From Octopus sinensis (taxonomy: Eukaryota), in contig NW_021830461.1 in NCBI RefSeq assembly GCF_006345805.1, positions 263 to 64,262 of the forward strand: 64,000 bases of DNA. Reading direction: 5' to 3'. Made by a program: the position numbers and the translations under genes. Positions within the stretch are counted from its first letter, which is position 1, and each line of letters begins with the position of its first letter. The notes under the pieces are model-generated. The model was not told where the DNA came from and ran no database searches. It was given only the letters and a program-made list of their open reading frames with translations. Below are positions 914 through 64,000 of this stretch, one piece after another.

Positions 914-1973
914 TTAATCACTATTAAAAAACTCCGTTCTGAAATTCTCACAAAAACTACAAAGATTTGAATACATCTTTGATGCGTTATCCGTAAAAGT
1001 AATTAAAGAATCGATAGTCATGAAAGCATAAATATGGCCATAGGCAATCGCATCCAATTCACACGGAATTCTAAAACAGTAAAGTCCATATAAAACACGT
1101 TTTTGACAAAAAATATCTATTTTCCCCCAATAGTCGGGATAAATAGTCAAACGAATTTAATACACAATCAAAAACCTAAATCAATAAAAAACAATAAAAA
1201 CTTCTTTTTAGTTTTTGGAGTTACTTTTGAGGAAAAATAACGATACCTATTTTTCTGGCATTGAATCCACGGAATAATTAAATTTAGTGGAAAAGGATAA
1301 CACAAAGCAATACGGGGACGAGTTACCTTTAATAAAAATTCAAGTAAATATGAAATGCCCTCACTTTTGAGGTAGCATCCCATTATTAGAAAATATAATT
1401 AAATTAAACAACCTTTTTATAAATATTATCATCACACCACGTTATATATGTCTATATTTTTAAGGAAAATAATAAACTTCACAGTCAGCCAAATCTCCAA
1501 TGATAATGTACATAATTGTAGAGGCCAGATCACGTTTTTGTATTCCGAATGATAAAGTAGGAGAAAGTCCCTGAATTTTTTATTATGAATATCACTTTGA
1601 TCTCAATGAATTTAAATACAGATTCAATTCCAGATAGAAGAAGAGGGCCGACCTTAATAAAAGGAATCTCCCCTAATATGTTACATTTTGTTAGATTTTT
1701 AACCGTTTGGAGAAATTTCTTCTGCATTTTTATAATATTCTACATTATATGGTATTTTGATAATCTTAAAAAGTGCTTGCATTGCTTGACAGTTTGCATA
1801 CTGATCGGGTAATATCTGAGAACCTGTTTTAAGTTTATTGAAAAAAAGTTTAATACTTTCATTAACCTGATATAACGTAATTGTCTCCGGCAGGGGTAAT
1901 GATTCTACGGAGAAATTAAAAACATTTTCGAACTGTATTTAAGGAAATTGGTTAAGTTGCACACTAGACTCAT
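914..1973 (-). CDS. MTX2: Metaxin-2, copy 1; tiny introns; one apparent 1-nt frameshift near 1205
   Basis: Spliced translation MSLVCNLTNFLKYKSLPLPETITLYQ..NAEEISPNGEIPFIKVG..TWCDD..YPFPLN..CELDAIAYGHIY..YSNLCSFC matches metaxin-2 motifs; GT-AG introns of 25-33 nt plus one of 86 nt. Confidence 0.9.
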
Positions 1974-2029
1974 TAATAGTAATAGGGAATTTAATGATTG
2001 ATTCGAAAAGTTTTTTAATTTTAAAATAT

Positions 2030-2770
2030 AAACTTTATCAACAGAAATTTTGAACGGATCGCTTTGGAACGGGAATGTTTCCCCCAGAAGTGAGGCATTA
2101 TATTGCCTATTGCAGGATTGAGAATCTGTTTTTTTAACCAAGGGAGCTTTGTTTAACTATTTTATAAGAAGCAAAAAAACCGTTGATCATTTGGCAACCC
2201 AATGTGGGAAAATGCTCAACAGTAATTACGTCAGAAAACATAACGAAGTCGTGAAATGTATTCACTTGTATGTCTGTAGGAAGTATAGAATCCGCAAAGT
2301 TAAAAAATTTAAAGAATATTCACTTCAGTCAATCATATTCACATAAAATGTTGAAATATGTGAAGATTCTTTAATAATTACAGACACAAAAATTTAATGT
2401 AACAAGACTGATATATTCATGTACGACAAAATAAAAAAACGAAATTACTATCATCGAAGTGGGACGTCCCCTCTCGAAGTAGGACAGGACCTGCCTGAAG
2501 CAGGCCGAAGTTGAGAAATGCCATAAATGCAATCCTTTGGGCATGGATTTATCCAGCCTCTACGACGCTCAAATCAAAATAATTTTACTGGATATGACAT
2601 GTGACGGTGTCGTTTTTAAGTTTTTCAAGAATTACATTGAAAAGTTGGCAATTGAAGACGTTTCTGTGTTTCAGCAAACACTTCTTTAGAATTTACAATT
2701 TATCCAAAACCAAGCATGTGTTTCTTAAATCTATGCGAGGAATTTAACACACTTTAGAGACATGGAATAC
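2030..2770 (+). mobile_element. R4/Dong-type (RLE) non-LTR retrotransposon remnant
   Basis: SEALYCLLQD..KTVDHLATQCGKMLNSNYVRKHNEVVKCIHL Zn-knuckle region followed by a degenerate PD-type endonuclease; contains stops. Confidence 0.75.
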
Positions 2771-3129
2771 TAAAAAAATCCCTTTAAACAAAAAATTCGA
2801 ATTTGATTTAAATCTGTTTGATAAAACTTAGTGTACTACAAGGAAATAAATAGAAATAAATAGAAAAATGAATGTATACAACAGTAAATACGAATTTATC
2901 TGCGGAGATAAAGTATACCTAAAAAAATTACGGATACTCAAGTTAAAAAAGATTATGGAACAAAACTTTCGTCACGGCTAAATAAATTAGAGTCTCCATT
3001 CTATTCAGGGGTCAAAACAATTAACATTTTGTCAAACAATCAAGTCGAGATTAAGAACCATTTTTATTTAATAGATAAAATATGCTAAAGAAGGTGTATA
3101 AAGGATTCCGACTTTTCTTTTCCAAAGGG

Positions 3130-3440
3130 GAAAATGTCTGCTCTTGGACGTCAAGGGTATAAACTCGTTTTTGGCTAGAACATAGTAGCATCAATCGAAA
3201 GCCCTGGAGCCCCAACAGAACGGGCCGAAAAGATGAAACATGCGAAACATGATGATGTCAGGAATTGCAGAGTGTTTGGCCTCCTGACGCCTAAAATACG
3301 AGGACCTTCCGCTCGGAGCCTGCTCTGACATATCGGGTTACTTCTGGATAAGGTTACTGACGATCAATCCGAGAACTGGTATCTCCCAACAAGATTTCCT
3401 GCTTTAGTCAAAAATAATGCCCTGTCTGTCCGACAATAAC
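3130..3440 (+). mobile_element. Degenerate CRE-clade LINE 3' remnant
   Basis: Residual similarity to the SPG..AE..K and RE..W..Q.IS segments of the other CRE copies. Confidence 0.5.
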
Positions 3441-3514
3441 CATTTTTTTTCTTTTAAACAATTTTTTTCTAATAAACATATTCTAATCAAAAAAATAAAA
3501 CTAAAAGAATAAAA

Positions 3515-5094
3515 TCAGGTATTTTTATTGATAAAACTTTCCAATATATTTATTGTATTTTTCACATTCTTAGCTTTTGCCTTTATTGCTGCTTTGTGAC
3601 GTTTAGTCTTGTTATGTAGATTCCAGGTTTTCTCATCAACATAAAACGTCATTTCACAGATTTTACAAGTTCGCATGGATACGCCCCTCGATCTTTGCTC
3701 GACTTCAGTAATAAAATTAATCTTCTCTTTGGGAAATTGGCATTCACGTTTCTGAATTATAATCACCAGAGACAATACAGCCAAATAGTCAGCAACAATG
3801 GTAATTGCCATTGGAATTACGTCTGTCGACAGATCCTTGGATCCTGTGGCATCTAATTTATATACACAATAGCATTCAGGTCTACTACACCCCTCATAGG
3901 TCTCTGAAATAATACAAATAGTCATTAATTTTTACGAGTTAAAAAACGTTTTCTTATCCAGCCAAGTTGTTGTCTGGCATAGCGCTTAGTTGAATTTTTC
4001 AACCTTTCAACGCCTGAAAATAGTTTTAAAAAAAATAACTTTTTTCAAGTAATTTTTTTCCTTCTATCGAGTCTTCGCACACATTTTCGTTAAGCATCAA
4101 ATATTCGTGAAACTCCTTAAAGCCTATAGACTGGAAAATTCCCCGTTGATAGTCATAATGTCTATAAATATTATTCATATACAACAACCCTTTCTGGGTT
4201 TTACGATTTTCACTATAACGATGATGAAAATCGACAAGTTCATCAACCAGACCATTTTCCAGCATTTTATCAACTCTTTCATCAATTAACTTATCAAGCT
4301 CTGAAAATAAATATTTAAAAAATCCAGACCTTTCAAATCCCGATAAACAAAAACGATACAAAAATCATCAATTCGGAGTCTATATTTTGTCCCTTGTCTT
4401 TGTGCAGAGTATAGTTCAGTGATAGACTTGCCAGTTCGTTTATAAACTTCAATCGCTCTAAAAAATGTTAAAAAAAAACTTTTTTATTTTCCGAGAATCG
4501 TTTGGATGAAATTTGGAGGCATGAACAGAATCAATTTCCATTAACAATTTGTGGTTGTCCTCGTTCTCTTGGTCCATCACAATATCTTTAAAATAATTTA
4601 GAAAAATCACCATTTGAATTATAATTGTGAGAAAAACTAATAAATTTTAGTAAATTATTTTTACTACTTAACTTCCAAAAGTGATTCCCAAAGAATCGAT
4701 TCCAAATAATAATTTGTACCTCCCTCGATGATTGGAAGTCCACTGCCATTTTTGTATAGATTTTCAATGTAAAATAGTTAAGTGAAAATGCATGAAAATA
4801 TTAAATGATAATAAAGGATATAATTTGTAATGCAGAATCACTGTACATCTTGACATTATAATTTTCATATAAAGGGTCCAAAAAGTCAATTAAATGATGA
4901 GGACACGCGTTTAACTCAGAAGGAGTGGGTTTATTGGTAATAATATTTAATCCTTTGTACATCTGCATAGCATCAGCATTTATAATGCTTCCATTAAATT
5001 TTTTGGCCAATGCAAATGCTATTTGTGATTTTCCAGAACCAGTTGGGCCAAGTACAGCTACAAGTGGACGCAATCGGCCACCACTAGTCTTCAT
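3515..5094 (-). CDS. TRIT1: tRNA dimethylallyltransferase (TRIT1/MiaA family), copy 1
   Basis: GPTGSGKS P-loop, [42 protein letters not shown] and a C-terminal C2H2 finger CKICE..HNKTKRH; tiny introns. Confidence 0.95.
4769..4821 (-). other. U12-type (minor spliceosome) AT-AC intron, 53 nt, in TRIT1
   Basis: Starts ATATCCTTT, has a CACTTAAC branch-like motif and ends TTTTAC; removal joins SALQI to [21 protein letters not shown] in frame. Confidence 0.85.
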
Positions 5095-5289
5095 ATGGTT
5101 TTTAATTTTTTAATTAAATATAAATTAATAAAAAACATTTAATTAAAAAAATATTTAGGAATATATTTTTCTATTTTATTGAGATTGTTTACATCCCATA
5201 AACTGGCTTATGTGCTAGCCGTCGTGTAATTTAAAAATTGATAAAACCAAATAGTCTATTTCGAAATGAAAATTAGGTACTAAGGGAGT

Positions 5290-5930
5290 GAAAAAGGATA
5301 CCCTAATATTCTTCCCAAAGAAGTAGTAAGATAATGTTTAGAGAAATTGCTGCCACTGAGCTAGGTTTAATTCCTATTTCAAATACTTCTGTGAGCAGAC
5401 TGATCAAGGATATGTTTGATGACATCGAAACCCTTTTGGTTCGGCGAATAAAAAAATCTGAATTTTTTCCATTTCAAGTAGATAAAAGCTCAGATATTAC
5501 AAGAATGCAATTTTCTGTTTTATTTCGTTATATGGACGATGAATCCATTATTGAAGATTTTTTTCCTCAAAGAGTCGTCGAAACAACAAAGGGATATGAC
5601 ATTTTCAATCTTATAAATTCATATTTCGAGCATTTAAAGTTAGATTGGAATGAATGCATAGGTATCTGCACTGATGGTGCTCTATCAGTGACGGGGGATG
5701 ATAGAGACTTTGTTTCTGTTGCAAAAAATAAAAATCCAGACTTAATTCACAAGCATTATTTTATTCATCATGAGGCATGCTTTGGACAGGGTCGTAAAAA
5801 TTATCAATTATATCAAAATGAGTCCGTTGTAATTACGATAGCTCTCGGAACTTTATGAAAATACAGAACATTCAATTTTGATTTACCGCACTGAACTAAA
5901 ATGGCTTCGAATTGTTTCTATGAACTATAC
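5290..5930 (+). mobile_element. Degenerate hAT (Buster/ZBED5-like) transposase remnant
   Basis: ORF 5334..5858 contains FQVDKSSD, GICTDGA and HYFIHHEA, decayed versions of the DE/D, CTDGA and HCxxH motifs. Confidence 0.8.
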
Positions 5931-6093
5931 AAAAAAAGTTGGATAACTTTATTGAATGCTTTAATAATGAATGTTAGTGTTGCAAGATAGCACACCTTGC
6001 CGATATTTTTAATGAACTTAATGTTCTCAATAGCAGCATACAAATCTGTCGAGTTGTACAAACAAATTTTTTTTGCTATGTACAAAACAAAAA

Positions 6094-6153
6094 CTCCCCG
6101 ACCGGGAATCGAACCCGGGCAACGCGGCATACTAACCATTATACTATCGGGGA
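6094..6153 (-). pseudogene. tRNA-Asp-like gene lacking the anticodon loop (60 nt)
   Basis: TCCCCGATAGTATAATGGTTAGTATGCCGCGTTGCCCGGGTTCGATTCCCGGTCGGGGAG: acceptor stem, D arm (A box) and T arm (B box) intact, followed by TTTT; about 12 nt of the anticodon arm missing. The Asp assignment rests on body similarity only. Confidence 0.75.
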
Positions 6154-7796: not shown

Positions 7797-9510
7797 AATG
7801 AATCGATTAAAATTAGTTTTATCTATTTTATAATTTGTTAGTTAGCCTCATCGTTAACAGGCAAAAAATAATCATCAGAACCAAACATATTTTGTTGCGC
7901 CCCACGCTGTCGACCAAAGCGACCTTCGTTGATGACAGGGTTGACAGGATGACCTAATATTCAGTCTTGCGCGATGATTATTTTTTATATTGAGAAGTGC
8001 TGAGAAGCCATGTTTGCATAAATATGTTGTCGGGAATATAAGCAACAAATTTAATGCATTTGCGCTTACGAAAGGATAATGCTTACACATTTCGCACCAA
8101 AATCTTGATAAAGCAAGTTTTTCATACAAATCTTTTGCGTTTGAATTATTGATCATGTCAATTAGAGCCTCTTCGATATTTTCATCGACCAAACGTGGAT
8201 CAACACTGAATGGTGTACGAATGAATTTCAAATCAATTTCGTTCAATTCTGGAAAGTATTTATTTACTTCTTGTTGAAGATATGTTAAATGTGCATAAAT
8301 AAGTTCGGTTATTTTTTTGATTTCAAATGCATCTATATTTACAGATTGTTCTTCAAAAGATTCAAACATAGTAAAATTATTTAGTTTTACTTTTTCTTTC
8401 CACAGTGTTAACTTCATCAAAAAAGCACTAATAATTAATATGAGACAGTTAACAAACTTAATTTTATCCACAAAATCAATTATTGTTTCATGTCTTCCCT
8501 GAAGCGATTTGTTGAGTGAATTTATACGAAAGAAGACATCTCTCAAGTAAGCAAGTTTAGATAGCCATGAACTATCCATTAATTTCGAAATAAATTCCGA
8601 TGATTTGGAATTGTTTTCGCGAATAAAATATTCAGATAATTCATTCCTCAAAGAAAAAACTCTGGCAAGAATGTTTCCCCGAGATAACCATCTCACCTCA
8701 GTGTGGAATACCAAAGCCTTTCCATCCTTTTCAAATTCTTCGCAAATAAGTCTGAAAATGCGCAAATTTAAAGCACTCTTTTTAATATAATTTATGATAT
8801 GTACGACATCATCGAGAACATATCTTAAATCTGAAGGTAATGTTTTTGCAGCAAGTGCATATCGATGTAGCATACAATGCATATGTTTCGTTTCCTGGTT
8901 AGCAAGTCTGACTTGGCCTCTAAAGCCAGAATGAAAGCCAAGCATTGCTGGAGCTCCATCGGTTGCGCAACAACATACATTATTCCAAGATAACCCAACA
9001 CTGTCAAAAAACATAGAAATTGCTTGAAAAATATCTTTTCCTTTAGTGGTCGATTCAAGCGAATAGGAAAATAAAAATTCCTCTTTAAAATCTCCGTCAT
9101 AGACATAACGAGCAAATATTATTAATTGAGCACAGTTCGCTACATCGGTGGATTCATCAACTTGTATAGCGAAATTTTGATGGCATAAAGTTTTTATTTG
9201 TTCTACCACCTGTTAAAATAAATAATATAATATCAATAACCTGACACTTAATATTTTCTGACATTTCAGAAATTCGTCGATGAACAGTATCATTCGATAA
9301 TGATATTTCCGAAATCATATTTTCAGCGTGAGTGCCAATAAGAGTACGTATATGTCTTTACAACAAGGAAGAATCAGTTTTTCGGCAATATTATGAGGTT
9401 TCTTTTCTTTCGCTATACGTAATGAAATTATGTAAGATGCTAATAGCATGGAATTATGAGAAGGCAAAGTTTGTATGAAACGAGTCAATACTTGATTTTT
9501 CATAAAAAAC
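7797..9510 (-). mobile_element. hAT Buster/Charlie-type transposase copy A, with two tiny introns and a chimeric 3' end
   Basis: IQVDESTD, CATDGAPAM, HCMLHRYALA, HTEVRWLSRG, PTTYLCKHGFS; introns at 9210-9240 and 8428-8457; frameshift near 9355. Confidence 0.92.
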
Positions 9511-15063: not shown

Positions 15064-16440
15064 ATGAATCGATTAAAATTAGTTTTATCTATTTTATAAT
15101 TTGTTAGTTAGCCTCATCGTTAACAGGCAAAAAATAATCATCAGAACCAAACATATTTTGTCGCGCCCCACGCTGGCGACCAAAGCGACCTTCGTCGATG
15201 ACAGGGTTGACAGGATGACCTAATATTCAGTCTTGCGCGATGATTATTTTTTATATTGAGAAGTGCTGAGAAGCCATGTTCGCATAAATATGTTGTCGGG
15301 AATATAAGCAACAAATTTAATGCATTTGCGCTTACGGAAGGATAATGCTTACACATTTCGCACCAAAATCTTGATAAAGCAAGTTTTTCATACAAATCTT
15401 TTGCGTTTGAATTATTGATCATGTCAATAAAAGCCTCTTCGATATTTTCATCGACCAAACGTGGATCAACACTGAATGGTGTACGAATGAATTTCAAATC
15501 AATTTCGTTCAATTCTGGAAAGTATTTATTTACTTCTTGTTGAAGATATGTTAAATGTGCATAAATAAGTTCGGTTATTTTTTTGATTTCAAATGCATCT
15601 ATATTTACAGATTGTTCTTCAAAAGATTCAAACATAGTAAAATTATTTAGTTTTAATTTTTCTTTCCACAGTGTTAACTTAATCAAAAAAGCACTATAAT
15701 TAATATGAAACAGTTAACAAACTTATTTTATCCACAAAATCAATTATTGTTTCATGTCTTCCCTGAAGCGATTTGTTGAGTGAATTTATACGAAAGAAGA
15801 CATCTCTCAAGTAAGCAAGTTTAGATAGCCATGAACTATCCATTAATTTCGAAATAAATTCCGATGATTTGGAATTGTTTTCGCGAATAAAATATTCAGA
15901 TAATTCATTCCTCAAAGAAAAAACTCTGGCAAGAATGTTTCCCCGAGATAACCATCTCACCTCAGTGTGGAATAACAAAGCCTTTCCATCCTTTTTAAAT
16001 TCTTCGCAAATAAGTCTGAAAATGCGCAAATTTAAAGCACTCTTTTTAATATAATTTATGATATGTACGACATCATCGAGAACATATCTTAAATCTGAAG
16101 GTAATGTTTTTGCAGCAAGTGCATATCGATGTAGCATACAATGCATATGTTTCGTTTCCTGGTTAGCAAGTCTGACTTGGCCTCTAAAGCCAGAATGAAA
16201 GCCAAGCATTGCTGGAGCTACATCGGTTGCGCAACAACATACATTATTCCAAGATAACCCAACACTGTCAAAAAACATAGAAATTGCTTGAAAAATATCT
16301 TCTCCTTTAGTGGTCGATTCAAGCGAATAGGAAAATAAAAATTCCTCTTTAAAATCTCCGTCATAGACATAACGAGCAAATATTATTAATTGAGCACAGT
16401 TCGCTAAATCGGTGAATTCATCAACTTGTATAGCGAAATT
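15064..16440 (-). mobile_element. hAT Buster transposase copy B (near-identical to copy A)
   Basis: ORFs 15141..15686 and 15700..16278 match copy A, including the chimeric 3' end and the intron (15694-15722, 29 nt). Confidence 0.92.
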
Positions 16441-16540
16441 GTTGACAGTGTTAGGTTATCTTGGAATAATGTATGTTGTTGACAGTGTTGGGTTATCTTG
16501 GAATAATGTATGTTGTTGACAGTGTTGGGTTATCTTGGAA
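16441..16540 (+). repeat. Tandem 37-nt repeat (2.7 units) templated from the transposase ORF
   Basis: The unit GTTGACAGTGTTGGGTTATCTTGGAATAATGTATGTT is the reverse complement of about 16234-16271. Confidence 0.92.
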
Positions 16541-17131
16541 AAAATAACCGAACTTATTTATGCACATTTAACATATCTTCAACCAGAAGTAAATAAATAC
16601 TTTCCAGAATTGAACGAAATTGATTTGAAATTCATTCGTACACCATTCAGTGTTGATCCACGTTTGGTCGATGAAAATATCGAAGAGGCTTTTATTGACA
16701 TGATCAATAATTCAAACGCAAAAGATTTGTATGAAAAACTTGCTTTATCAAGATTTTGGTGCGAAATGTGTAAGCATTATCCTTCCGTAAGCGCAAATGC
16801 ATTAAATTTGTTGCTTATATTCCCAACAACATATTTATGCGAACATGGCTTCTCAGCACTTCTCAATATAAAAAATAATCATCGCGCAAGACTGAATATT
16901 GAAGATGACATCAGGGTATGCTTGTCGACAACCGAGACTCTTATTGAAAAAATTGCCTCGAAAAAACAATATCAACCTTCTAACTAATTTTCTCTATTGA
17001 TTTAATAATAAATTTTGTTTTTAGATAAGTAAAATTTTTTTGACAAAAAACTTAATAAATATGTAGGGGGTCCGCGAAATTTTTCATTTACTCACAAGGG
17101 GTCCGCGGAGAAAAAAGGTTGAGAACCACTG
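16541..17131 (+). mobile_element. hAT Buster copy C: native transposase 3' end and right TIR
   Basis: ORF ends IEDDIRVCLSTTETLIEKIASKKQYQPSN*; subterminal GGGGTCCGCG repeats and terminal AAAGGTTGAGAACCACTG (reverse complement CAGTGGTTCTCAACC, Buster/Charlie type). Confidence 0.9.
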
Positions 17132-35598: not shown

Positions 35599-37702
35599 CA
35601 GGGGTTTTCAACCTTTTTAGCTCAAGGGCCAAATCGATAATTAAGATTAGCTTCGCGGGCCGCACAAAAAATATTTTATATATTTTTATATTTTTCATTT
35701 TACTAAATATTGATTCGCATAAATATGTAGATTCAACAGAACAAATTTTATTTGGTAAATGAAGCTAGATTAGTTTAATATTATAAATCGTCACGCTCCG
35801 GCAGCCAGTATCGCGTGCGTGTTGCCACGAAGAACTGCAATTCCGATACGTTGGCGAAGCCAATACCCCTCGCGACTGTCCCTCCTTCGTTTAGCCAGCA
35901 TCGCCCCAATTTCCTTGAGAAATTCCGCGGTTTTGGATCCCACTACACCAGACGTCTCCATCGAGATTGGGACAAAACGGAAAAGTTTTCCGATCTCCAA
36001 ATACTTAGATATCTTCGCCTTTTCTGCTGCATTAGCAGCCCAACCGGGCGAATGAATATTCCGAAGAATCATGGACTGGGAGAACGTGTCTACGCACGTC
36101 GCATCCCATGCGAGTGATTTTCCCTGGGAGTACGGGAAAAGAGTTATCCCATCGGGCCTTCTGCCATCTCCCCGGTCAAGCCCGATGGGTTCCAGGTGTG
36201 CTGGAATCCTGCGCTCTCGAGGGCCCGTCGTATTATGTCGTTGAGTGCGGCATGGCGGGGAGCGCGACCTGCACTCCTCTTGCAAGACAAAGGGTGTAGT
36301 CCTTTGGAATCGACTATTCCTCCACACCGGCATCTGTGTTCCTGACAGACGTCAAGACCCAAGCGTTGTGCAACACCGATTCTCACACAATCGTCGTCCA
36401 TAAGCGTACCGAAAGAACTGCATGGAAATGCGTGGAGCCATGCACCACTCCCGTGCTGTGCTCCGGATAGCAAACAGACGAGCCGGTGTTGGTTCAACTC
36501 CCGCTTCAGGTCATCAACGACAGCTTTGCATGATATTGCGTCCCAACAATTCTGTCTCGAGACATCATCTGGGATTGAAAGTCCGGCTTCCTTCCATTGC
36601 AAGCAAGCCTTGTCAAATACTGTGTCCAAGGAGAGTCCAGTAGTGTTACGTAGGATTTCCTGGACGAGATGACTGCAGCTTGAAAGCGATGACAGATATG
36701 CCGGGAATGCGAAATCCAGCGCCGACCTGAGACCCGTTCCTCCGATGCGTGTAGGAAGCTTGCATTGATTCCAACCAGGTTCGTCAAAGTGGATGTTCAA
36801 GAGCGATTCAGCTGAACTTCTCAAGGTCCTATCCAGTGTCTGTAGAATGTCTCGATGTTCCAAGCAGGGAGAACAACGGAGAGCGTATTGGAGTTTAGGC
36901 AAGCCAATGCTATTTTTCAAAAGGAAGAATGCAGTATGAGCATTGAGTAAGGAGAGTTTCTCCGTAACTCTAGAAAGACCCTTGTTTTTTTCCAGCAGAT
37001 GGCACCGCAGTTCCTTTTCGCCAAGTGGCACCCAAGAAAGTATGCCCTCTCCCGAGGTAAGACAGTAATCCCAGGTAATATCGATTTGAAAGACTTGACC
37101 ACGTTGATAAAATCACTTTCCGAGTATGTGATATTTATCAGCTCCGATTTCTTTATATTTATATCAAGTCCGAGTTTTCGTAGTACAGGCACGGCTTGTG
37201 ACAGAACGTCAAAAACTTTTCCCCACGGCCCTCCAATCGTGGCATCATCAAGATACCAGAGGTTCAGTTCCGCGCTGATGGAACGTACAGTTTCGTCATA
37301 GATTCATATATGCATTGTGTGTTATATTTTTGAATTTGTCTTGAGGAAATAATTCGTAAAAATTAATAATGGACGCATTTTTGAATAATGCCGCCAGTTC
37401 TATATCATGTTGTAAATTAATGAGTTCTATTTCAAACTTTGCAGGCGCATCCTTAATTTTCACGCTGAATGGAGTTGCGAATATTTTCATTAAAGGAAGG
37501 AATTCTTTAAAATTCTACAAATTAAATTTATATAAATGTAACCCAAAACGTGCTTCAAATTGATTAATGAAATCACCGATTATGGATATGTTTAACCTTA
37601 AGAATGAATAATTAAATTTAAACATTACTAAAAAATTAAAAAAGTTAGTTACTCTAGAGGGGCCGCAAAAAAAATTCTGGGGGCCGCATTTGAGAACCGC
37701 TG
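35599..37702 (-). mobile_element. Internally deleted hAT (SPIN/Buster-like) element with both TIRs and 8-bp TSD GTCTAGAC; hosts a nested CRE LINE
   Basis: Ends CAGGGGTTTTCAA / TTGAGAACCGCTG; TSD at 35591-35598 and 37703-37710 with central TA; remnant FATPF..ELINLQ..STYLCESIFS. Confidence 0.9.
35780..37290 (-). mobile_element. CRE-clade LINE, 5'-truncated, RT (YLDD) to REL; longest CRE copy in the window
   Basis: LNLWYLDDATIGG; ORFs 36144..37031 and 35791..36333 are joined by 1-nt frameshifts. Confidence 0.92.
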
Positions 37703-40001: not shown

Positions 40002-41558
40002 TTAAAGATGATTTAAAATGGGTTCATCGTATGAGGAGATAATATCACAAATAGTATAAACAAGCGAATCAAGTTCTTTGAATTCCATTGCACATGAAAC
40101 AGTTATTTTTATGCTGGAAAATAAAGCGAAGTACCAAAACCTTGGCGGAGAAGGCACCATTTGAGGATAATACGGACGACTTTGGTATGCCATTACCAAA
40201 GCAATGCCTTGAAAGATGGCTTGGTTGACAATATGCTTCAACAAATCTACATTTTCATGTCTCAACAGAAGAATCGGAACGTTCTTATCTCCAGCAACTT
40301 CGAATTTTGGGAGTCTAAAATTCAAAAAAAACAAAAGAAACAATTTTTCGAACAAACTCCTTAAATATGCTGTATTTTCAGATAATTTGACAAACCTCCA
40401 TTCCTGAGATAGGAGAGGAAGTTTTGCAATCACATCTGCAACAGTAATCGGAGGAGATGAGGCAGAAAACAAATAGCCGGAGCCGGCAAGTCTTTGATGA
40501 TTAATAATTGATGAGCTGCCAATACAAAGACCACCAAGGGAAGAAAAAGAATTTTCAAGAGAGAGAATAATCATATCAATTTGGGAAATCTGTCAAAGTC
40601 ATAATATAATGATCTACATCACATTCAAAAAGTTGAGTAAGTCCTCTCTGATTTATTACACCAATAGAATAGCTCTCATCCAATATGATCCTTGCTTTGT
40701 ATCTGTATTTCAATCTGATAAGTGTGGGGAGATCAGGAATGTCCATATGTTTTTGATTAACGCCCTCTGCCACTATGAACTTGCCCGGAGAAAGGCTTGC
40801 GGCTAGCAACTGTTCCAAATGGCCCCAATCGTGGTGTCTGTAGAAATGAATGCGACCTCGAGATGTTTTGGCACCAAACGCGATCCATTGAGAACACGAT
40901 TCGTCCAAAAACACATCATCATCACTGTGTATGCACGAGGGAAGCACACTTATAATAACAGAACAAGAGTATGAATAAAGAATAGCTGCCTCTGCTCCCA
41001 TAAATAAAGCAAATTCTTCTTCCAATTGTAAATGGCATTCTATAATGTATTGCGTAGGTATTTTACCTAATGTTCCATAAAATGCTCGAGGTCCACAACT
41101 CCCTACGCCGCATTCTGATAGAATTGATATAGCCTGTTCCTGCGAATTAATAGGAAAATCAATATACTTCTGATTCAGGATTCCCAGCAAGATCAATAAA
41201 ATTATAGGAAGAAAAATTAATACATTTAATCCCATCAACTGTTATATGCTTACCAGGTTTACTAGAACATAAGCTACATTTCGTACCTTGAGATTATGCG
41301 TCTCTTGCGAACAGGTTGCTCAGTAAATAAAGGAGTGGGAGTCCATTCTTCGATTAGTTCCTCTTCTTCCTTTAATTTTTTTGTTAAATAAAATACTTTT
41401 TTGGTTAGAGCACTTTTTATTTTGTAGCTTTTTTGAAAAAATAGAGATATGCAACCGATGATCAAAACTACCTCGAACAGAAGGCGATATAATGGAGCAT
41501 TCAATGCTGCGGCTATATATTCGTGATATTTCCATATGAAAAACGGTTCACCATACAT
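40002..41558 (-). CDS. SPTLC1: Serine palmitoyltransferase subunit 1 (LCB1)
   Basis: APLYRLLFE..EEWTPTPL, INFSSYNF, CGVGSCGPRAFYGT, LDESYSIGV, GSGYLFSASSPP; tiny introns. Confidence 0.93.
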
Positions 41559-44243: not shown

Positions 44244-44711
44244 TTAATAATAGAAGTCAAATTTGGACAGATCTTCATAATATTGGGGAAATAGGGGTTC
44301 ATATTCTTCATAACTCCATCCCAGAAAATTATTATAATTTTTAGGCTGTGGAGTTTCATATTCTTGAAAATAGAGGTCGTCATAAAATTTATTGAGAGTA
44401 GGCTCACATTCATTTGAGAAGCACTCGTAAAATTGACAAGGGGGATATTTTCCCCAAACTTCTTCATAAAAAGTATAGGTATTTTTTTCCCCTTTTTCTC
44501 TTTTTAGGATTCTTGGGTTGTTGTAATACAACCTTAAGACGCGGTTGAACTTGTCAACCGTCATCTTAGGGTTGTTTTTCAACTCCCCCCACATTCGTGC
44601 AAGTTCTGCTGGATTGGTGATTTGAAATGAATTCGACATTCCAATCCATGAGAGATATGGACACTTCTTATTCAAATTTTCAATTAGAAATTCATATAAA
44701 CACGTTCTCAT
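44244..44711 (-). CDS. ETS-domain transcription factor, divergent; no intron seen; 5' end uncertain
   Basis: LYEFL..LSW..FQITNPAELARMWGELKNNPKMTVDKFNRVLRLYY..KNTYTF. Confidence 0.88.
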   Translation of the reverse strand: MRTCLYEFLIENLNKKCPYLSWIGMSNSFQITNPAELARMWGELKNNPKMTVDKFNRVLRLYYNNPRILKREKGEKNTYTFYEEVWGKYPPCQFYECFSNECEPTLNKFYDDLYFQEYETPQPKNYNNFLGWSYEEYEPLFPQYYEDLSKFDFYY

Positions 44712-44767
44712 GTCAAAATAGTATTTATCATCCGCAGAACGCAAAACACGTATTTATATTGTTTGTG

Positions 44768-53319: not shown

Positions 53320-54180
53320 TACACATGCCACGAGCACCCTTGTCCAAGAGATTCTCCAACCCGTTACCGAATCTCCTATGGACTCAGAGTCAGTCGCGGT
53401 AGAAAGTCGCTGGCTTGGGTTGTCTTTTAAGTTTCCGCAGAATAAACACGCACAGGACGAATGGGACAGGATTCTCTGTGATCAGAAGTCAAACAACCTC
53501 AAGCCTAAGCTTAACAAACATAGCTTGGCTTGTTTATTAGCCGCCTCGCAGCCATATTGACCGCCATCCCTATGAGATCGATTTGAACCTTATTGGACGA
53601 TGATTCCCTGAGGATCGGCGTCTCATTGCGCCTGGGGCTAAACGTATGCAGAGAACACCGGTGCCGCTGTGGATCCAGTGTTGACCCCTTTGGATTGCAC
53701 CTATTATCGTGTCAGAAAAGCTCCGGACGCTTTCCCCGACACGCTGCCCTGAACGACATAGTCAAGCGGACTCTTGAAACTGCCGGATTCTCATCACAGT
53801 TGGAATCGGTCGGCCTGGTTCGGGAGGATGGTAAACGTCCTGACGGCCTAACGACTTTCCCCTTCATCTGGGACGCAACTTGCACGGACATTTTCTCCGA
53901 CGGAAACATCTTTACGTCAGCCACAGGACCGGGCTCCGCGGCCAACCTTGCGGAAACATTAAAAGTCAAGAAATACAGTGCATTATCACACCGTCATATC
54001 TTTGCCCCGATCGCAGTGGAGACGTCGAGAGTCCTCGGTCCCAGAACTAAAATATTCCTTATGGGGGAGCTGGCAAGCAGGAGAAATGATCATCGGGAAC
54101 GGACATGGCTTTTCCAACGCATATCAATAGCTATCTTGCGTGGGAATTGCCATTCCATCTCATCTTATCCTCTGATGCTA
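53320..54180 (+). mobile_element. CRE-clade LINE 3' portion
   Basis: ORF 53593..54237: LRLGLNVCREHRCRCG..HLLSCQKSSGRFPRH..RPDG..WDATC. Confidence 0.9.
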
Positions 54181-54699
54181 AAAGTTTCATATAAAAAAAG
54201 ATTTATAAATTGTTTGTTGATGTTGAGTAAAGTATAGAAAAATCTTTATTTTAAAATAATGTAAAATATCAATCTAGAAAAAACAAATAAAATAATCAAG
54301 TAAATGATCAAGTACAATGTAAATTTATAACTCCGAGCGGACTTTCCTATTTTACTAACATTAAGAATAGACTGCTTAAATAAAGAGGTTTGTCTTTCAC
54401 TGGCAAAATGCTTAAAAATGTAATAGAAATATTTCATAATACCAGTTTGTTAGATAGGAGTTTACTGTCTTTAACTGCCTCTTTCATATCTAAAGCTACC
54501 TTGAATTAAACCAACAAAAATACTTGTTTGACATTCATAGCTTTGCGCAGCATGATATCATGTAATGAATTCTCAGAAAAATAAGATTCATTATCTTTTA
54601 AAATTATAAAACACAAGGTAACCATTCATTAGAATATACTATTATATATTTAAACATAATTATATTTTTAAATAGCACTAATTATAAATTTATTAAATG

Positions 54700-59187: not shown

Positions 59188-60248
59188 TTAATCACTATTA
59201 AAAAACTCCGTTCTGAAATTCTCACAAAAACTACAAAGATTTGAATACTTCTTTGATGCGTTATCCGTAAAAGTAATTAAAGAATCGATAGTCATGAAAG
59301 CATAAATATGGCCATAGGCAATCGCATCCAATTCACACGGAATTCTAAAACAGTAAAGTCCATATAAAACACGTTTTTGACAAAAAATATCTATTTTCCC
59401 CCAATAGTCGGGATAAATAGTCAAACGAATTTAATACACAATCAAAAACCTAAATCAATAAAAAACAATAAAAACTTCTTTTTTAGTTTTTGGAGTTACT
59501 TTTGAGGAAAAATAACGATACCTATTTTTCTGGCATTGAATCCACGGAATAATTAAATTTAGTGGAAAAGGATAACACGAAGCAATACGGGGACGAGTTA
59601 CCTTTAATAAAAATTCAAGTAAATATGAAATGCCCTCACTTTTGAGGTAGCATCCCATTATTAGAAAATATAATTAAATTAAACAACCTTTTTATAAATA
59701 TTATCATCACACCACGTTATATATGTCTATATTTTTAAAGAAAATAATAAACTTCACAGTCAGCCAAATCTCCAATGATAATGTACATAATTGTAGAGGC
59801 CAAATCACGTTTTTGTATTCCGAATGATAGGGTAGGAGAAAGTCCCTGAATTTTTTATTATGAATATCACTTTGATCTCAATGAATTTAAATACAGATTC
59901 AATTCCAGATAGAAGAAGAGGGCCGACCTTAATAAAAGGAATCTCCCCTAATATGTTACATTTTGTTAGATTTTTAACCGTTTGGAGAAATTTCTTCTGC
60001 ATTTTTATAATATTCTACATTATATGGTATTTTGATAATCTTAAAAAGTGCTTGCATTGCTTGACAGTTTGCATACTGATCGGGTAATATCTGAGAACCT
60101 GTTTTAAGTTTATTGAAAAAAAGTTTAATACTTTCATTAACCTGATATAACGTAATTGTCTCCGGCAGGGGTAATGATTCTACGGAGAAATTAAAAACAT
60201 TTTCGAACTGTATTTAAGGAAATTGGTTAAGTTGCACACTAGACTCAT
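59188..60248 (-). CDS. MTX2: Metaxin-2, copy 2 (reading frame intact)
   Basis: Same exons as copy 1; the A6 run near 59480 keeps KTKKE|VFDC in frame. Confidence 0.92.
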
Positions 60249-60304
60249 TAATAGTAATAGGGAATTTAATGATTGATTCGAAAAGTTTTTTAATTTTAAA
60301 ATAT

Positions 60305-61045
60305 AAACTTTATCAACAGAAATTTTGAACGGATCGCTTTGGAACGGGAATGTTTCCCCCAGAAGTGAGGCATTATATTGCCTATTGCAGGATTGAGAAT
60401 CTGTTTTTTTAACCAAGGGAGCTTTGTTTAACTATTTTATAAGAAGCAAAAAAACCGTTGATCATTTGGCAACCCAATGTGGGAAAATGCTCAACAGTAA
60501 TTACGTCAGAAAACATAACGAAGTCGTGAAATGTATTCACTTGTATGTCTGTAGGAAGTATAGAATCCGCAAAGTTAAAAAATTTAAAGAATATTCACTT
60601 CAGTCAATCATATTCACATAAAATGTTGAAATATGTGAAGATTCTTTAATAATTACAGACACAAAAATTTAATGTAACAAGACTGATATATTCATGTACG
60701 ACAAAATAAAAAAACGAAATTACTATCATCGAAGTGGGACGTCCCCTCTCGAAGTAGGACAGGACCTGCCTGAAGCAGGCCGAAGTTGAGAAATGCCATA
60801 AATGCAATCCTTTGGGCATGGATTTATCCAGCCTCTACGACGCTCAAATCAAAATAATTTTACTGGATATGACATGTGACGGTGTCGTTTTTAAGTTTTT
60901 CAAGAATTACATTGAAAAGTTGGCAATTGAAGACGTTTCTGTGTTTCAGCAAACACTTCTTTAGAATTTACAATTTATCCAAAACCAAGCATGTGTTTCT
61001 TAAATCTATGCGAGGAATTTAACACACTTTAGAGACATGGAATAC
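60305..61045 (+). mobile_element. R4/Dong-type remnant, duplicate of 2030-2770
   Basis: Part of the segmental duplication. Confidence 0.75.
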
Positions 61046-61404
61046 TAAAAAAATCCCTTTAAACAAAAAATTCGAATTTGATTTAAATCTGTTTGATAAA
61101 ACTTAGTGTACTACAAGGAAATAAATAGAAATAAATAGAAAAATGAATGTATACAACAGTAAATACGAATTTATCTGCGGAGATAAAGTATACCTAAAAA
61201 AATTACGGATACTCAAGTTAAAAAAGATTATGGAACAAAACTTTCGTCACGGCTAAATAAATTAGAGTCTCCATTCTATTCAGGGGTCAAAACAATTAAC
61301 ATTTTGTCAAACAATCAAGTCGAGATTAAGAACCATTTTTATTTAATAGATAAAATATGCTAAAGAAGGTGTATAAAGGATTCCGACTTTTCTTTTCCAA
61401 AGGG

Positions 61405-61715
61405 GAAAATGTCTGCTCTTGGACGTCAAGGGTATAAACTCGTTTTTGGCTAGAACATAGTAGCATCAATCGAAAGCCCTGGAGCCCCAACAGAACGGGC
61501 CGAAAAGATGAAACATGCGAAACATGATGATGTCAGGAATTGCAGAGTGTTTGGCCTCCTGACGCCTAAAATACGAGGACCTTCCGCTCGGAGCCTGCTC
61601 TGACATATCGGGTTACTTCTGGATAAGGTTACTGACGATCAATCCGAGAACTGGTATCTCCCAACAAGATTTCCTGCTTTAGTCAAAAATAATGCCCTGT
61701 CTGTCCGACAATAAC
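61405..61715 (+). mobile_element. CRE remnant, duplicate of 3130-3440
   Basis: Part of the segmental duplication. Confidence 0.5.
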
Positions 61716-61789
61716 CATTTTTTTTCTTTTAAACAATTTTTTTCTAATAAACATATTCTAATCAAAAAAATAAAACTAAAAGAATAAAA

Positions 61790-63369
61790 TCAGGTATTTT
61801 TATTGATAAAACTTTCCAATATATTTATTGTATTTTTCACATTCTTAGCTTTTGCCTTTATTGCTGCTTTGTGACGTTTAGTCTTGTTATGTAGATTCCA
61901 GGTTTTCTCATCAACATAAAACGTCATTTCACAGATTTTACAAGTTCGCATGGATACGCCCCTCGATCTTTGCTCGACTTCAGTAATAAAATTAATCTTC
62001 TCTTTGGGAAATTGGCATTCACGTTTCTGAATTATAATCACCAGAGACAATACAGCCAAATAGTCCGCAACAATGGTAATTGCCATTGGAATTACGTCTG
62101 TCGACAGATCCTTGGATCCTGTGGCATCTAATTTATATACACAATAGCATTCAGGTCTACTACACCCCTCATAGGTCTCTGAAATAATACAAATAGTCAT
62201 TAATTTTTACGAGTTAAAAAACGTTTTCTTATCCAGCCAAGTTGTTGTCTGGCATAGCGCTTAGTTGAATTTTTCAACCTTTCAACGCCTGAAAATAGTT
62301 TTAAAAAAAATAACTTTTTTCAAGTAATTTTTTTCCTTCTATCGAGTCTTCGCACACATTTTCGTTAAGCATCAAATATTCGTGAAACTCCTTAAAGCCT
62401 ATAGACTGGAAAATTCCCCGTTGATAGTCATAATGTCTATAAATATTATTCATATACAACAACCCTTTCTGGGTTTTACGATTTTCACTATAACGATGAT
62501 GAAAATCGACAAGTTCATCAACCAGACCATTTTCCAGCATTTTATCAACTCTTTCATCAATTAACTTATCAAGCTCTGAAAATAAATATTTAAAAAATCC
62601 AGACCTTTCAAATCCCGATAAACAAAAACGATACAAAAATCATCAATTCGGAGTCTATATTTTGTCCCTTGTCTTTGTGCAGAGTATAGTTCAGTGATAG
62701 ACTTGCCAGTTCGTTTATAAACTTCAATCGCTCTAAAAAATGTTAAAAAAAAACTTTTTTATTTTCCGAGAATCGTTTGGATGAAATTTGGAGGCATGAA
62801 CAGAATCAATTTCCATTAACAATTTGTGGTTGTCCTCGTTCTCTTGGTCCATCACAATATCTTTAAAATAATTTAGAAAAATCACCATTTGAATTATAAT
62901 TGTGAGAAAAACTAATAAATTTTAGTAAATTATTTTTACTACTTAACTTCCAAAAGTGATTCCCAAAGAATCGATTCCAAATAATAATTTGTACCTCCCT
63001 CGATGATTGGAAGTCCACTGCCATTTTTGTATAGATTTTCAATGTAAAATAGTTAAGTGAAAATGCATGAAAATATTAAATGATAATAAAGGATATAATT
63101 TGTAATGCAGAATCACTGTACATCTTGACATTATAATTTTCATATAAAGGGTCCAAAAAGTCAATTAAATGATGAGGACACGCGTTTAACTCAGAAGGAG
63201 TGGGTTTATTGGTAATAATATTTAATCCTTTGTACATCTGCATAGCATCAGCATTTATAATGCTTCCATTAAATTTTTTGGCCAATGCAAATGCTATTTG
63301 TGATTTTCCAGAACCAGTTGGGCCAAGTACAGCTACAAGTGGACGCAATCGGCCACCACTAGTCTTCAT
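61790..63369 (-). CDS. TRIT1: tRNA dimethylallyltransferase, copy 2 (U12 AT-AC intron at 63044-63096)
   Basis: Same translation as copy 1. Confidence 0.95.
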
Positions 63370-63564
63370 ATGGTTTTTAATTTTTTAATTAAATATAAAT
63401 TAATAAAAAACATTTAATTAAAAAAATATTTAGGAATATATTTTTCTATTTTATTGAGATTGTTTACATCCCATAAACTGGCTTATGTGCTAGCCGTCGT
63501 GTAATTTAAAAATTGATAAAACCAAATAGTCTATTTCGAAATGAAAATTAGGTACTAAGGGAGT

Positions 63565-64000
63565 GAAAAAGGATACCCTAATATTCTTCCCAAAGAAGTA
63601 GTAAGATAATGTTTAGAGAAATTGCTGCCACTGAGCTAGGTTTAATTCCTATTTCAAATACTTCTGTGAGCAGACTGATCAAGGATATGTTTGATGACAT
63701 CGAAACCCTTTTGGTTCGGCGAATAAAAAAATCTGAATTTTTTCCATTTCAAGTAGATAAAAGCTCAGATATTACAAGAATGCAATTTTCTGTTTTATTT
63801 CGTTATATGGACGATGAATCCATTATTGAAGATTTTTTTCCTCAAAGAGTCGTCGAAACAACAAAGGGATATGACATTTTCAATCTTATAAATTCATATT
63901 TCGAACATTTAAAGTTGGATTGGAATGAATGCATGGGTATCTGCACTGATGGTGTTCTATCAGGGACGGGGGATGATAGAGACTTTGTTTCTGTTGCGAA
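63565..64000 (+). mobile_element. hAT remnant, duplicate of 5290-5725
   Basis: Part of the segmental duplication, with a few substitutions. Confidence 0.8.

Follow-up and report, generated by a model that had tools for sequence, protein, structure and literature searches.

A predicted 53-nt U12-type AT-AC intron in a compact TRIT1 gene, most likely from a dicyemid, in an octopus genome assembly

Introduction

In a compact gene for the tRNA dimethylallyltransferase TRIT1, located on a contig deposited as octopus DNA, we identified a 53-nt segment, hereafter I1, that is very probably an ancestral U12-type intron kept by the lineage from which the contig derives, most likely a dicyemid of Octopus sinensis. 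In U12-type splicing, U11 recognizes the 5' element of the intron, followed later by U6atac, and U12 recognizes the branch element. Features of this type are familiar, and in human the orthologous intron is already catalogued. However, two points appear to be unreported in the literature that we searched: the occurrence of a U12-type intron in a genome of dicyemid type, and the indirect evidence that it gives for retention of the minor spliceosome there. In that literature we found no report on whether dicyemids keep minor splicing. Large minor-intron surveys have excluded introns shorter than 30 nt and leave Dicyema unmentioned (PMC10639083), and the supplement of that study mentions neither Dicyema nor TRIT1.

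The DNA analyzed here, referred to as the window, is a stretch of 64,000 nt corresponding to bases 263-64262 of VCDQ01011650.1, an unplaced contig of assembly GCA_006345805.1 that is annotated by NCBI as Octopus sinensis.

Results

A 53-nt segment with U12-type signals interrupts the TRIT1 reading frame

The gene is encoded on the minus strand (Table 1), where an ATG at 5094 opens a frame whose first 23 residues lead on to …MYSDSALQI and then to …ISFIII*. Exon 1 (frame 0) thus meets a stop 7 codons beyond the I1 junction, and the next conserved TRIT1 block lies in a different frame, such that an excision of length 2 mod 3 is needed to connect the two. The 53 nt from 4821 to 4769 read ATATCCTTTATTATCATTTAATATTTTCATGCATTTTCACTTAACTATTTTAC, in the order ATATCCTTT…TCACTTAAC-TATTTTAC, with both GT and AG dinucleotides absent. 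I1 has the extended 5' splice site /[AG]TATCCTT(T), and its ATATCCTTT agrees with the U12-type consensus RTATCCTTT at 9/9 positions. Its TCCTTAAC-like branch motif lies within the usual distance of the 3' splice site (about 8-20 nt), with no long polypyrimidine tract; the CTTAAC core of this motif, TCACTTAAC, is exact, but the match to the 9-nt consensus TTCCTTAAC is only 7/9. The candidate branch adenosines, 4779 and 4778, stand 10 and 9 nt from the 3' end, approximately 27 nt separate the 5' site from the branch motif, and the AT…AC termini give the correct mRNA. A prior sequence-only reading had proposed a 53-nt intron at 4769-4821 with a U12 5' site, a branch-like motif and an AC end, and both its coordinates and its motifs proved correct.

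Table 1. Coordinates of TRIT1 and its introns within the window. Exon ranges are written in the direction of transcription.
Feature	Position	Strand	Description	Basis
TRIT1 (tRNA dimethylallyltransferase), copy A	3515..5094	-	seven exons, 436 aa	spliced model and homology
Exon E1, copy A	5094-4822	-		
Exon E2, copy A	4768-4673	-		
Exon E3, copy A	4565-4480	-		
Exon E4, copy A	4457-4330	-		
Exon E5, copy A	4300-4040	-		
Exon E6, copy A	4013-3936	-		
Exon E7, copy A	3903-3515	-	TGA stop included	
Predicted U12-type AT-AC intron I1	4769..4821	-	53 nt, phase 0, Ile91/Ile92	top-scoring excision, orthologous introns
I1 5' splice site ATATCCTTT	4813..4821	-		read from sequence
I1 branch-site motif TCACTTAAC	4777..4785	-	core CTTAAC	sequence comparison with orthologues
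I1 3' terminal AC dinucleotide	4769..4770	-		read from sequence
GT-AG intron I2	4566..4672	-	107 nt	boundaries inferred from open frame
GT-AG mini-intron I3	4458..4479	-	22 nt	spliced model
GT-AG mini-intron I4	4301..4329	-	29 nt	spliced model
GT-AG mini-intron I5	4014..4039	-	26 nt	spliced model
GT-AG mini-intron I6	3904..3935	-	32 nt	spliced model
TRIT1, copy B	61790..63369	-	offset +58275	1 synonymous coding difference from copy A
Second AT-AC intron, TRIT1 copy B	63044..63096	-	identical to I1 of copy A	

To compare I1 with other possible excisions, we enumerated all excisions of at most about 220 nt, whatever their termini, that stay in frame and free of stops (n=3509), and scored each of them with a profile built from 10 TRIT1 orthologues only. 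The AT-AC pair 4821/4769 received the top score of 166.4 bits, which was equaled only by slides of 1-3 nt that yield the same protein from non-standard ends. By the same scoring, the best GT-AG pair (4846/4743; 104 nt, in frame) reached 135.9 bits and the best GC-AG pair 129.6 bits. The GT-AG and GC-AG alternatives among in-frame, stop-free pairs up to 200 nt were rejected, each losing at least 17 conserved residues. The earlier assertion that TRIT1 is restored only by removing I1 therefore holds, with I1 the best of the 3509 excisions and no acceptable GT-AG alternative.

In the window as a whole, the ATATCCTT 8-mer alone occurs at a chance rate (5 matches vs 3.7 expected), as does GTATCCTT with 3 occurrences vs 1.9 expected. 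Scanning the window for the 5' motif followed at the correct spacing by CTTRAY and a terminal AC or AG returned the two TRIT1 copies and one chance match; this third candidate, at 49582-49495, lies without coding context and was rejected as a U12-type intron. The weight for I1 comes from the position of its motif, at the boundary predicted by orthology, where the 8-mer has a per-position chance of ~3e-5 by our arithmetic from the window counts, and not from the rarity of the 8-mer.

The spliced model encodes a complete TRIT1 protein

The best matches of the 436-aa model are metazoan TRIT1 proteins (E to 7e-80, 33-40% identity), and its alignment with ten orthologues is collinear through the I1 junction. 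The Pfam IPPT profile is matched over positions 1-242/243 (186 bits) in one stretch that spans this junction. The TRIT1 motifs GPTGSGKS (P-loop), GGTNYY and a 12-residue motif are all kept, and the columns of C387, C390, H404 and H410, which form the C-terminal C2H2 zinc finger, are invariant across the orthologue alignment. Combining a P-loop, a full IPPT domain and a C-terminal zinc finger, the model belongs with the TRIT1/Mod5/MiaA proteins. Within the model, the boundaries of I2 are the sole ones that keep the frame open. The length of this intron is fourfold the local norm and atypical for the gene, and its 3' end, CCAAGAG, is weak and lacks a pyrimidine run. Splitting these 107 nt around a micro-exon was considered and rejected on reading the sequence, as a stop arises in every split.

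Three NCBI models cover the locus (P0123, P0124 and P0125; window 1704-5094, minus strand), encoding 204-208 aa vs the 436 aa supported by homology; P0123 is named 'adenylate isopentenyltransferase 5, chloroplastic-like, partial [Octopus sinensis]'. The long GT-AG introns of these models bypass the GGTNYY core and add unrelated downstream sequence, and only IPPT fragments are matched by their products. Judged from the sequence, the NCBI models of this gene are mis-spliced.

I1 shares its position with U12-type introns of other animals

We retrieved TRIT1 loci of other animals and read the I1 boundary in each (Table 2). A U12-type intron occupies the same phase-0 codon boundary in the window, in the primate Sapajus, in the fish Astyanax and in the ribbon worm Tubulanus (Nemertea), placing I1 in positional orthology with accepted U12-type introns. 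The 5' site of Astyanax is ATATCCTTT, as in the window, while those of Sapajus and Tubulanus are ATATCCTTA and GTATCCTTA. The corresponding branch motifs are TTCCTTAAC in Astyanax, TCTTAAT in Sapajus and CCTTAAC in Tubulanus, whose intron runs GTATCCTT…CAG; the motif lies 7, 8 and 12 nt from the 3' end in the three orthologues, and the second A of the window motif lies 9 nt from it. Human TRIT1 is likewise catalogued among the minor-intron-containing genes (PMC7507305). The sequence-only reading had recommended checking whether the orthologous intron is U12-type in other animals; it is so in a primate, a fish and a nemertean, and the human gene is listed.

Table 2. The I1 boundary in TRIT1 of the window and of three other animals.
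Source	Boundary (exon / intron / exon)	Termini	Length
Window	…SALQI / ATATCCTTTATT…TTTTCACTTAACTATTTTAC / IENLY		53 nt
Sapajus apella	…RASAL / ATATCCTTAGGA…TCTTTCTTAATGTTCAC / IEDIF	AT-AC	3303 nt
Astyanax mexicanus	…RVLSL / ATATCCTTTATT…TTTCCTTAACCCTTCAC / IEDLH	AT-AC	8632 nt
Tubulanus polymorphus	…KALAI / GTATCCTTATTC…GGCCTTAACTTAAGTTTCAG / IDKLI	GT-AG	776 nt

The vertebrate introns resemble I1 in their codon boundary (…A-L-x-[IL] / I-E-[DN]-[LI]…), phase 0 and AT-AC termini, as well as in a ATATCCTT(T/A) 5' site and a CTTAA[CT] motif 7-9 nt from the 3' end. They differ from it above all in size, being thousands of nucleotides long, and I1 further departs from them in its slightly degenerate branch motif (TCACTTAAC vs TTCCTTAAC) and in belonging to a gene whose other introns are mostly 22-32 nt. 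The Tubulanus intron, from a spiralian as dicyemids are, has the position, the phase, an [AG]TATCCTT 5' site and the CCTTAAC branch of the same type, but is far longer and has switched subtype relative to I1, with GT-AG in place of AT-AC termini. At the same site we found no intron in the ostracod Darwinula stevensoni, whose TRIT1 is intron-free for at least its first 220 codons, nor in a copy from Oculina patagonica (labeled 'LOW QUALITY PROTEIN'), which looks intronless over its first 192 codons. The U12-type intron has thus been lost in some lineages, and these two genes read as examples of intron loss by deletion. The orthologous introns indicate that I1 is an ancestral bilaterian minor intron that was retained and drastically shortened.

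TRIT1 copies vary mostly at synonymous sites and in mini-introns

As the sequence-only reading had also stated, I1 is duplicated at 63044-63096, where we found an identical copy. The two TRIT1 copies belong to a direct duplication of at least 4.5 kb, in which window positions 1205-5725 correspond to 59480-64000 with 12 mismatches at an offset of 58,275 bp, and which is either a segmental duplication or assembly redundancy. Besides TRIT1, the duplicated stretch includes an hAT-derived ORF of FAM200/ZBED5-like type in divergent orientation, and the right copy of the duplication continues past the window end.

The same assembly holds four near-identical TRIT1 copies on three contigs: the two in the window and two others, L002 and L003, on VCDQ01009522.1 (29.6 kb) and VCDQ01001615.1 (279 kb). 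Coding differences among the four copies are found at 12 sites, with 10/12 synonymous and 2/12 nonsynonymous. Indels occur only in I3 (+1 nt in L003) and I4 (28 nt in L002 and L003), intron positions vary at ~4x the rate of exon positions, and 6/10 variable intron positions fall in I2. The synonymous bias, together with the restriction of indels to mini-introns, implies that TRIT1 is under constraint, pointing to purifying selection that acts on the reading frame after splicing, with interruptions at the places given by the model. I1 shows no variation among the four copies (0/53 nt vs ~2.5 expected from the rate in the other introns; P ~0.08 by our arithmetic), which is a hint of constraint only, as the copies, the sole relatives found, are too similar.

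The contig most likely derives from a dicyemid parasite

Among animals, introns as short as 22-32 nt have been reported only in Dicyema and in myxobolid myxozoans (PMC13644364). Dicyemid introns measure 24.9 ± 2.5 nt in D. acuticephalum, have a median of 27 nt in Dicyema sp. and a mean of 38 nt in D. japonicum (PMC2483917, PMC6543705, PMC6736024), and the four mini-introns I3-I6 are of the same kind. The renal sac of O. sinensis is inhabited by D. japonicum, whose genome has 36.7% GC and 49% repeats (PMC6736024); in the window, the GC content is ~34% and hAT-like and retroelement-like ORFs abound. Overall, the window presents U2 introns of the dicyemid type, mostly shorter than 30 nt (22, 29, 26, 32 and 28 nt, in two genes), in a cephalopod-associated metazoan.

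The second of these genes, at window 40002-41238 (minus strand), resembles a serine-palmitoyltransferase-type class I/II aminotransferase and consists of two adjacent ORFs, which a putative 28-nt GT-AG mini-intron (40617-40590) joins as …ECD / ISQIDMIILSLENSFSSLGG…. An ORF with an Ets DNA-binding domain lies at window 44244-44744 (minus strand; Pfam E=5e-18). Ets is a transcription-factor family typical of animals, and this domain, together with the affinities of TRIT1, places the source within Metazoa. From the combination of 22-32 nt introns, an Ets-domain gene and a cephalopod host, we infer a dicyemid contaminant: the contig is most likely DNA of a dicyemid kidney parasite that was assembled with its octopus host, and at least two further contigs, VCDQ01009522.1 and VCDQ01001615.1, are most likely of the same parasite origin. 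In the protein collection, no near-identical proteins were found besides 'Octopus sinensis' entries.

Several other features were noted in the window. ORFs of hAT-like or FAM200-ZBED5-like transposases, full or partial and some of them nearly identical, occur at 5334-5858 (+), 7875-9209 (-), 15141-16278 (-), 16535-16987 (+) and 63600-64000 (+), and fit a repeat-rich small genome. The ORFs at 35791-37031 (-) and 53593-54237 (+) are related through a common Cys/His-rich C-terminus (…HRCRCG…VD…GLH.LSC…GR.PRHAALNDI…); they are located in GC-richer segments (0.38-0.42), had no Pfam match and are probably retroelement remnants. At about 6088-6150 (-), a tRNA-like fragment retains acceptor, D-arm and T-arm sequence (…GGTTCGATTCCCGGTCGGGG) with no intact anticodon arm. 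ARAGORN reported no tRNA in the window and Rfam likewise made no call on this fragment, which could represent either a tRNA pseudogene or the head of a SINE derived from a tRNA.

Discussion

The mechanism we propose is that U11, and then U6atac, would pair with ATATCCTTT of I1, and U12 with the CTTAAC branch site, which precedes the terminal AC by 9-10 nt. Removal of I1 would then join …ALQI to IENLYKNG…, giving full-length conserved TRIT1. The neighboring U2-type introns would have shrunk to 22-32 nt and become almost signal-free, and I1 would have shrunk from kilobases to 53 nt with both of its extended recognition elements kept. Dicyemid U2-type introns have the weakest 5' signal known, 0.5 bit, and no branch-point signal (PMC2483917), such that a 9/9 5' motif and a branch motif are unlikely to have been kept without selection. 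Motifs of this quality at the ancestral U12 site would be hard to explain without continued recognition by minor snRNPs, suggesting, on these sequence grounds, that I1 is actually spliced and that minor snRNPs are present in the source organism. At gathering score and E<=1, Rfam returned no U11, U12, U4atac or U6atac in the 64-kb window, which says little on the whole genome, and the protein collection held no spliced product spanning the I1 junction. Short ENA and Logan matches, considered as transcript evidence, were rejected as exon ORFs of unrelated organisms.

An alternative reading, which we consider improbable, is that I1 is a relic whose minor spliceosome has been lost, so that the segment is excised by the major spliceosome in the manner of U2-dependent AT-AC introns, bypassed through GT(4846)…AG(4743), or retained to give a truncated or internally deleted protein. 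Such a loss has precedents in several animal lineages that evolve fast or are parasitic, namely nematodes, myxozoans, oikopleurids and tardigrades (PMC10639083), and the lack of minor snRNA hits in the 64-kb window by Rfam would fit it. Yet U2-dependent removal agrees poorly with the 5' end of I1, which is a perfect U12-type motif and not the ATAAGT-like motif of U2-type AT-AC introns. The 104-nt in-frame GT-AG pair does exist, but its use costs 30 bits and removes 17 residues, among which are an invariant Ile and a helix common to all orthologues; the codons it would delete are clearly conserved coding sequence, and the synonymous bias among copies indicates selection on the full reading frame. 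Moreover, after loss of the minor spliceosome one would expect decay of the motifs or loss of the intron, as in Darwinula. Still less probable is that the segment belongs to a non-functional copy or an assembly artefact, either a pseudogene lesion or a long-read indel error with motifs that are coincidental. Although the contig is unplaced, repeat-rich and derived from long reads, and some of the four near-identical copies, standing beside hAT-like elements, could be dead duplicates, the 53 nt are identical in 4/4 copies on three contigs, and the rest of the gene is intact, with variable coding sites that are mostly synonymous. Nor would an indel error add 53 nt with ATATCCTTT, CTTAAC and AC at an ancestral U12 site.

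A separate question, bearing on the source of the DNA and not on the nature of the intron, is whether the contig might be genuine octopus DNA or come from another octopus-associated eukaryote. We regard the chance of this as very small. The record was deposited and annotated as Octopus sinensis, but Octopus vulgaris has a distinct TRIT1 protein of 583 aa, 33% identical, encoded by a gene of ~350 kb, vs 1.6 kb in the window with introns in the size range of Dicyema and myxobolids (PMC13644364). The presence of D. japonicum in the renal sac of this very host, and the resemblance of its GC content and repeat load to those of the window (PMC6736024), also argue against an octopus origin, and the Ets domain and TRIT1 matches place the source in Metazoa.

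The sequence-only reading had further remarked that I1 is about twice the local U2 mode, and this is supported by 53 nt against 22, 29, 26 and 32 nt, though I2, a GT-AG intron as well, reaches 107 nt. Dicyemid mini-introns are GT-AG with almost no further consensus, whereas I1 is AT-AC, twice as long and has two extended elements. From this comes the idea of a separate size floor for the minor spliceosome, for which there is one intron, and a single intron cannot establish a floor. We hold it possible, but rather doubtful, that dicyemids run a working minor spliceosome and that about 50 nt is the lower limit for its substrates, probably because the U11/U12 di-snRNP must bind the 5' and branch sites simultaneously (~27 nt apart here). 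Lineages with heavy loss of minor introns often keep minor introns that are much longer than their major ones (PMC10639083), in agreement with this idea. In Blastocystis, however, minor introns have a mean of about 42 bp and a median of 39 bp, are 77% AT-AC and are enriched in phase 0 (PMC10639083), so that 53 nt is no eukaryotic record, though I1 may be among the shortest U12-type introns in animals. Blastocystis resembles the window in its compact genome and in miniaturized minor introns that are mostly AT-AC and often phase 0, but this stramenopile protist has such introns by the hundreds, whereas here we have one, longer, animal intron. If the size floor is true, I1 would provide a natural measure of it for the minor spliceosome, as distinct from the floor of the major spliceosome (about 20-25 nt).

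In practical terms, parasite contigs apparently sit inside a public octopus assembly, with their genes mis-modeled and labeled as octopus proteins, and gene finders that bar AT-AC or sub-30-nt introns will break such genes. As the losses of minor splicing listed so far fall in the four groups named above (PMC10639083), retention is the spiralian default and finding it here would be a moderate surprise. Nonetheless, an intact and conserved U12-type intron in an essential housekeeping gene constitutes good indirect evidence for minor splicing in dicyemids. Within this one gene, a signal-rich intron of 53 nt stands against signal-poor introns of 22-32 nt, which makes separate length floors for the two spliceosomes testable genome-wide.
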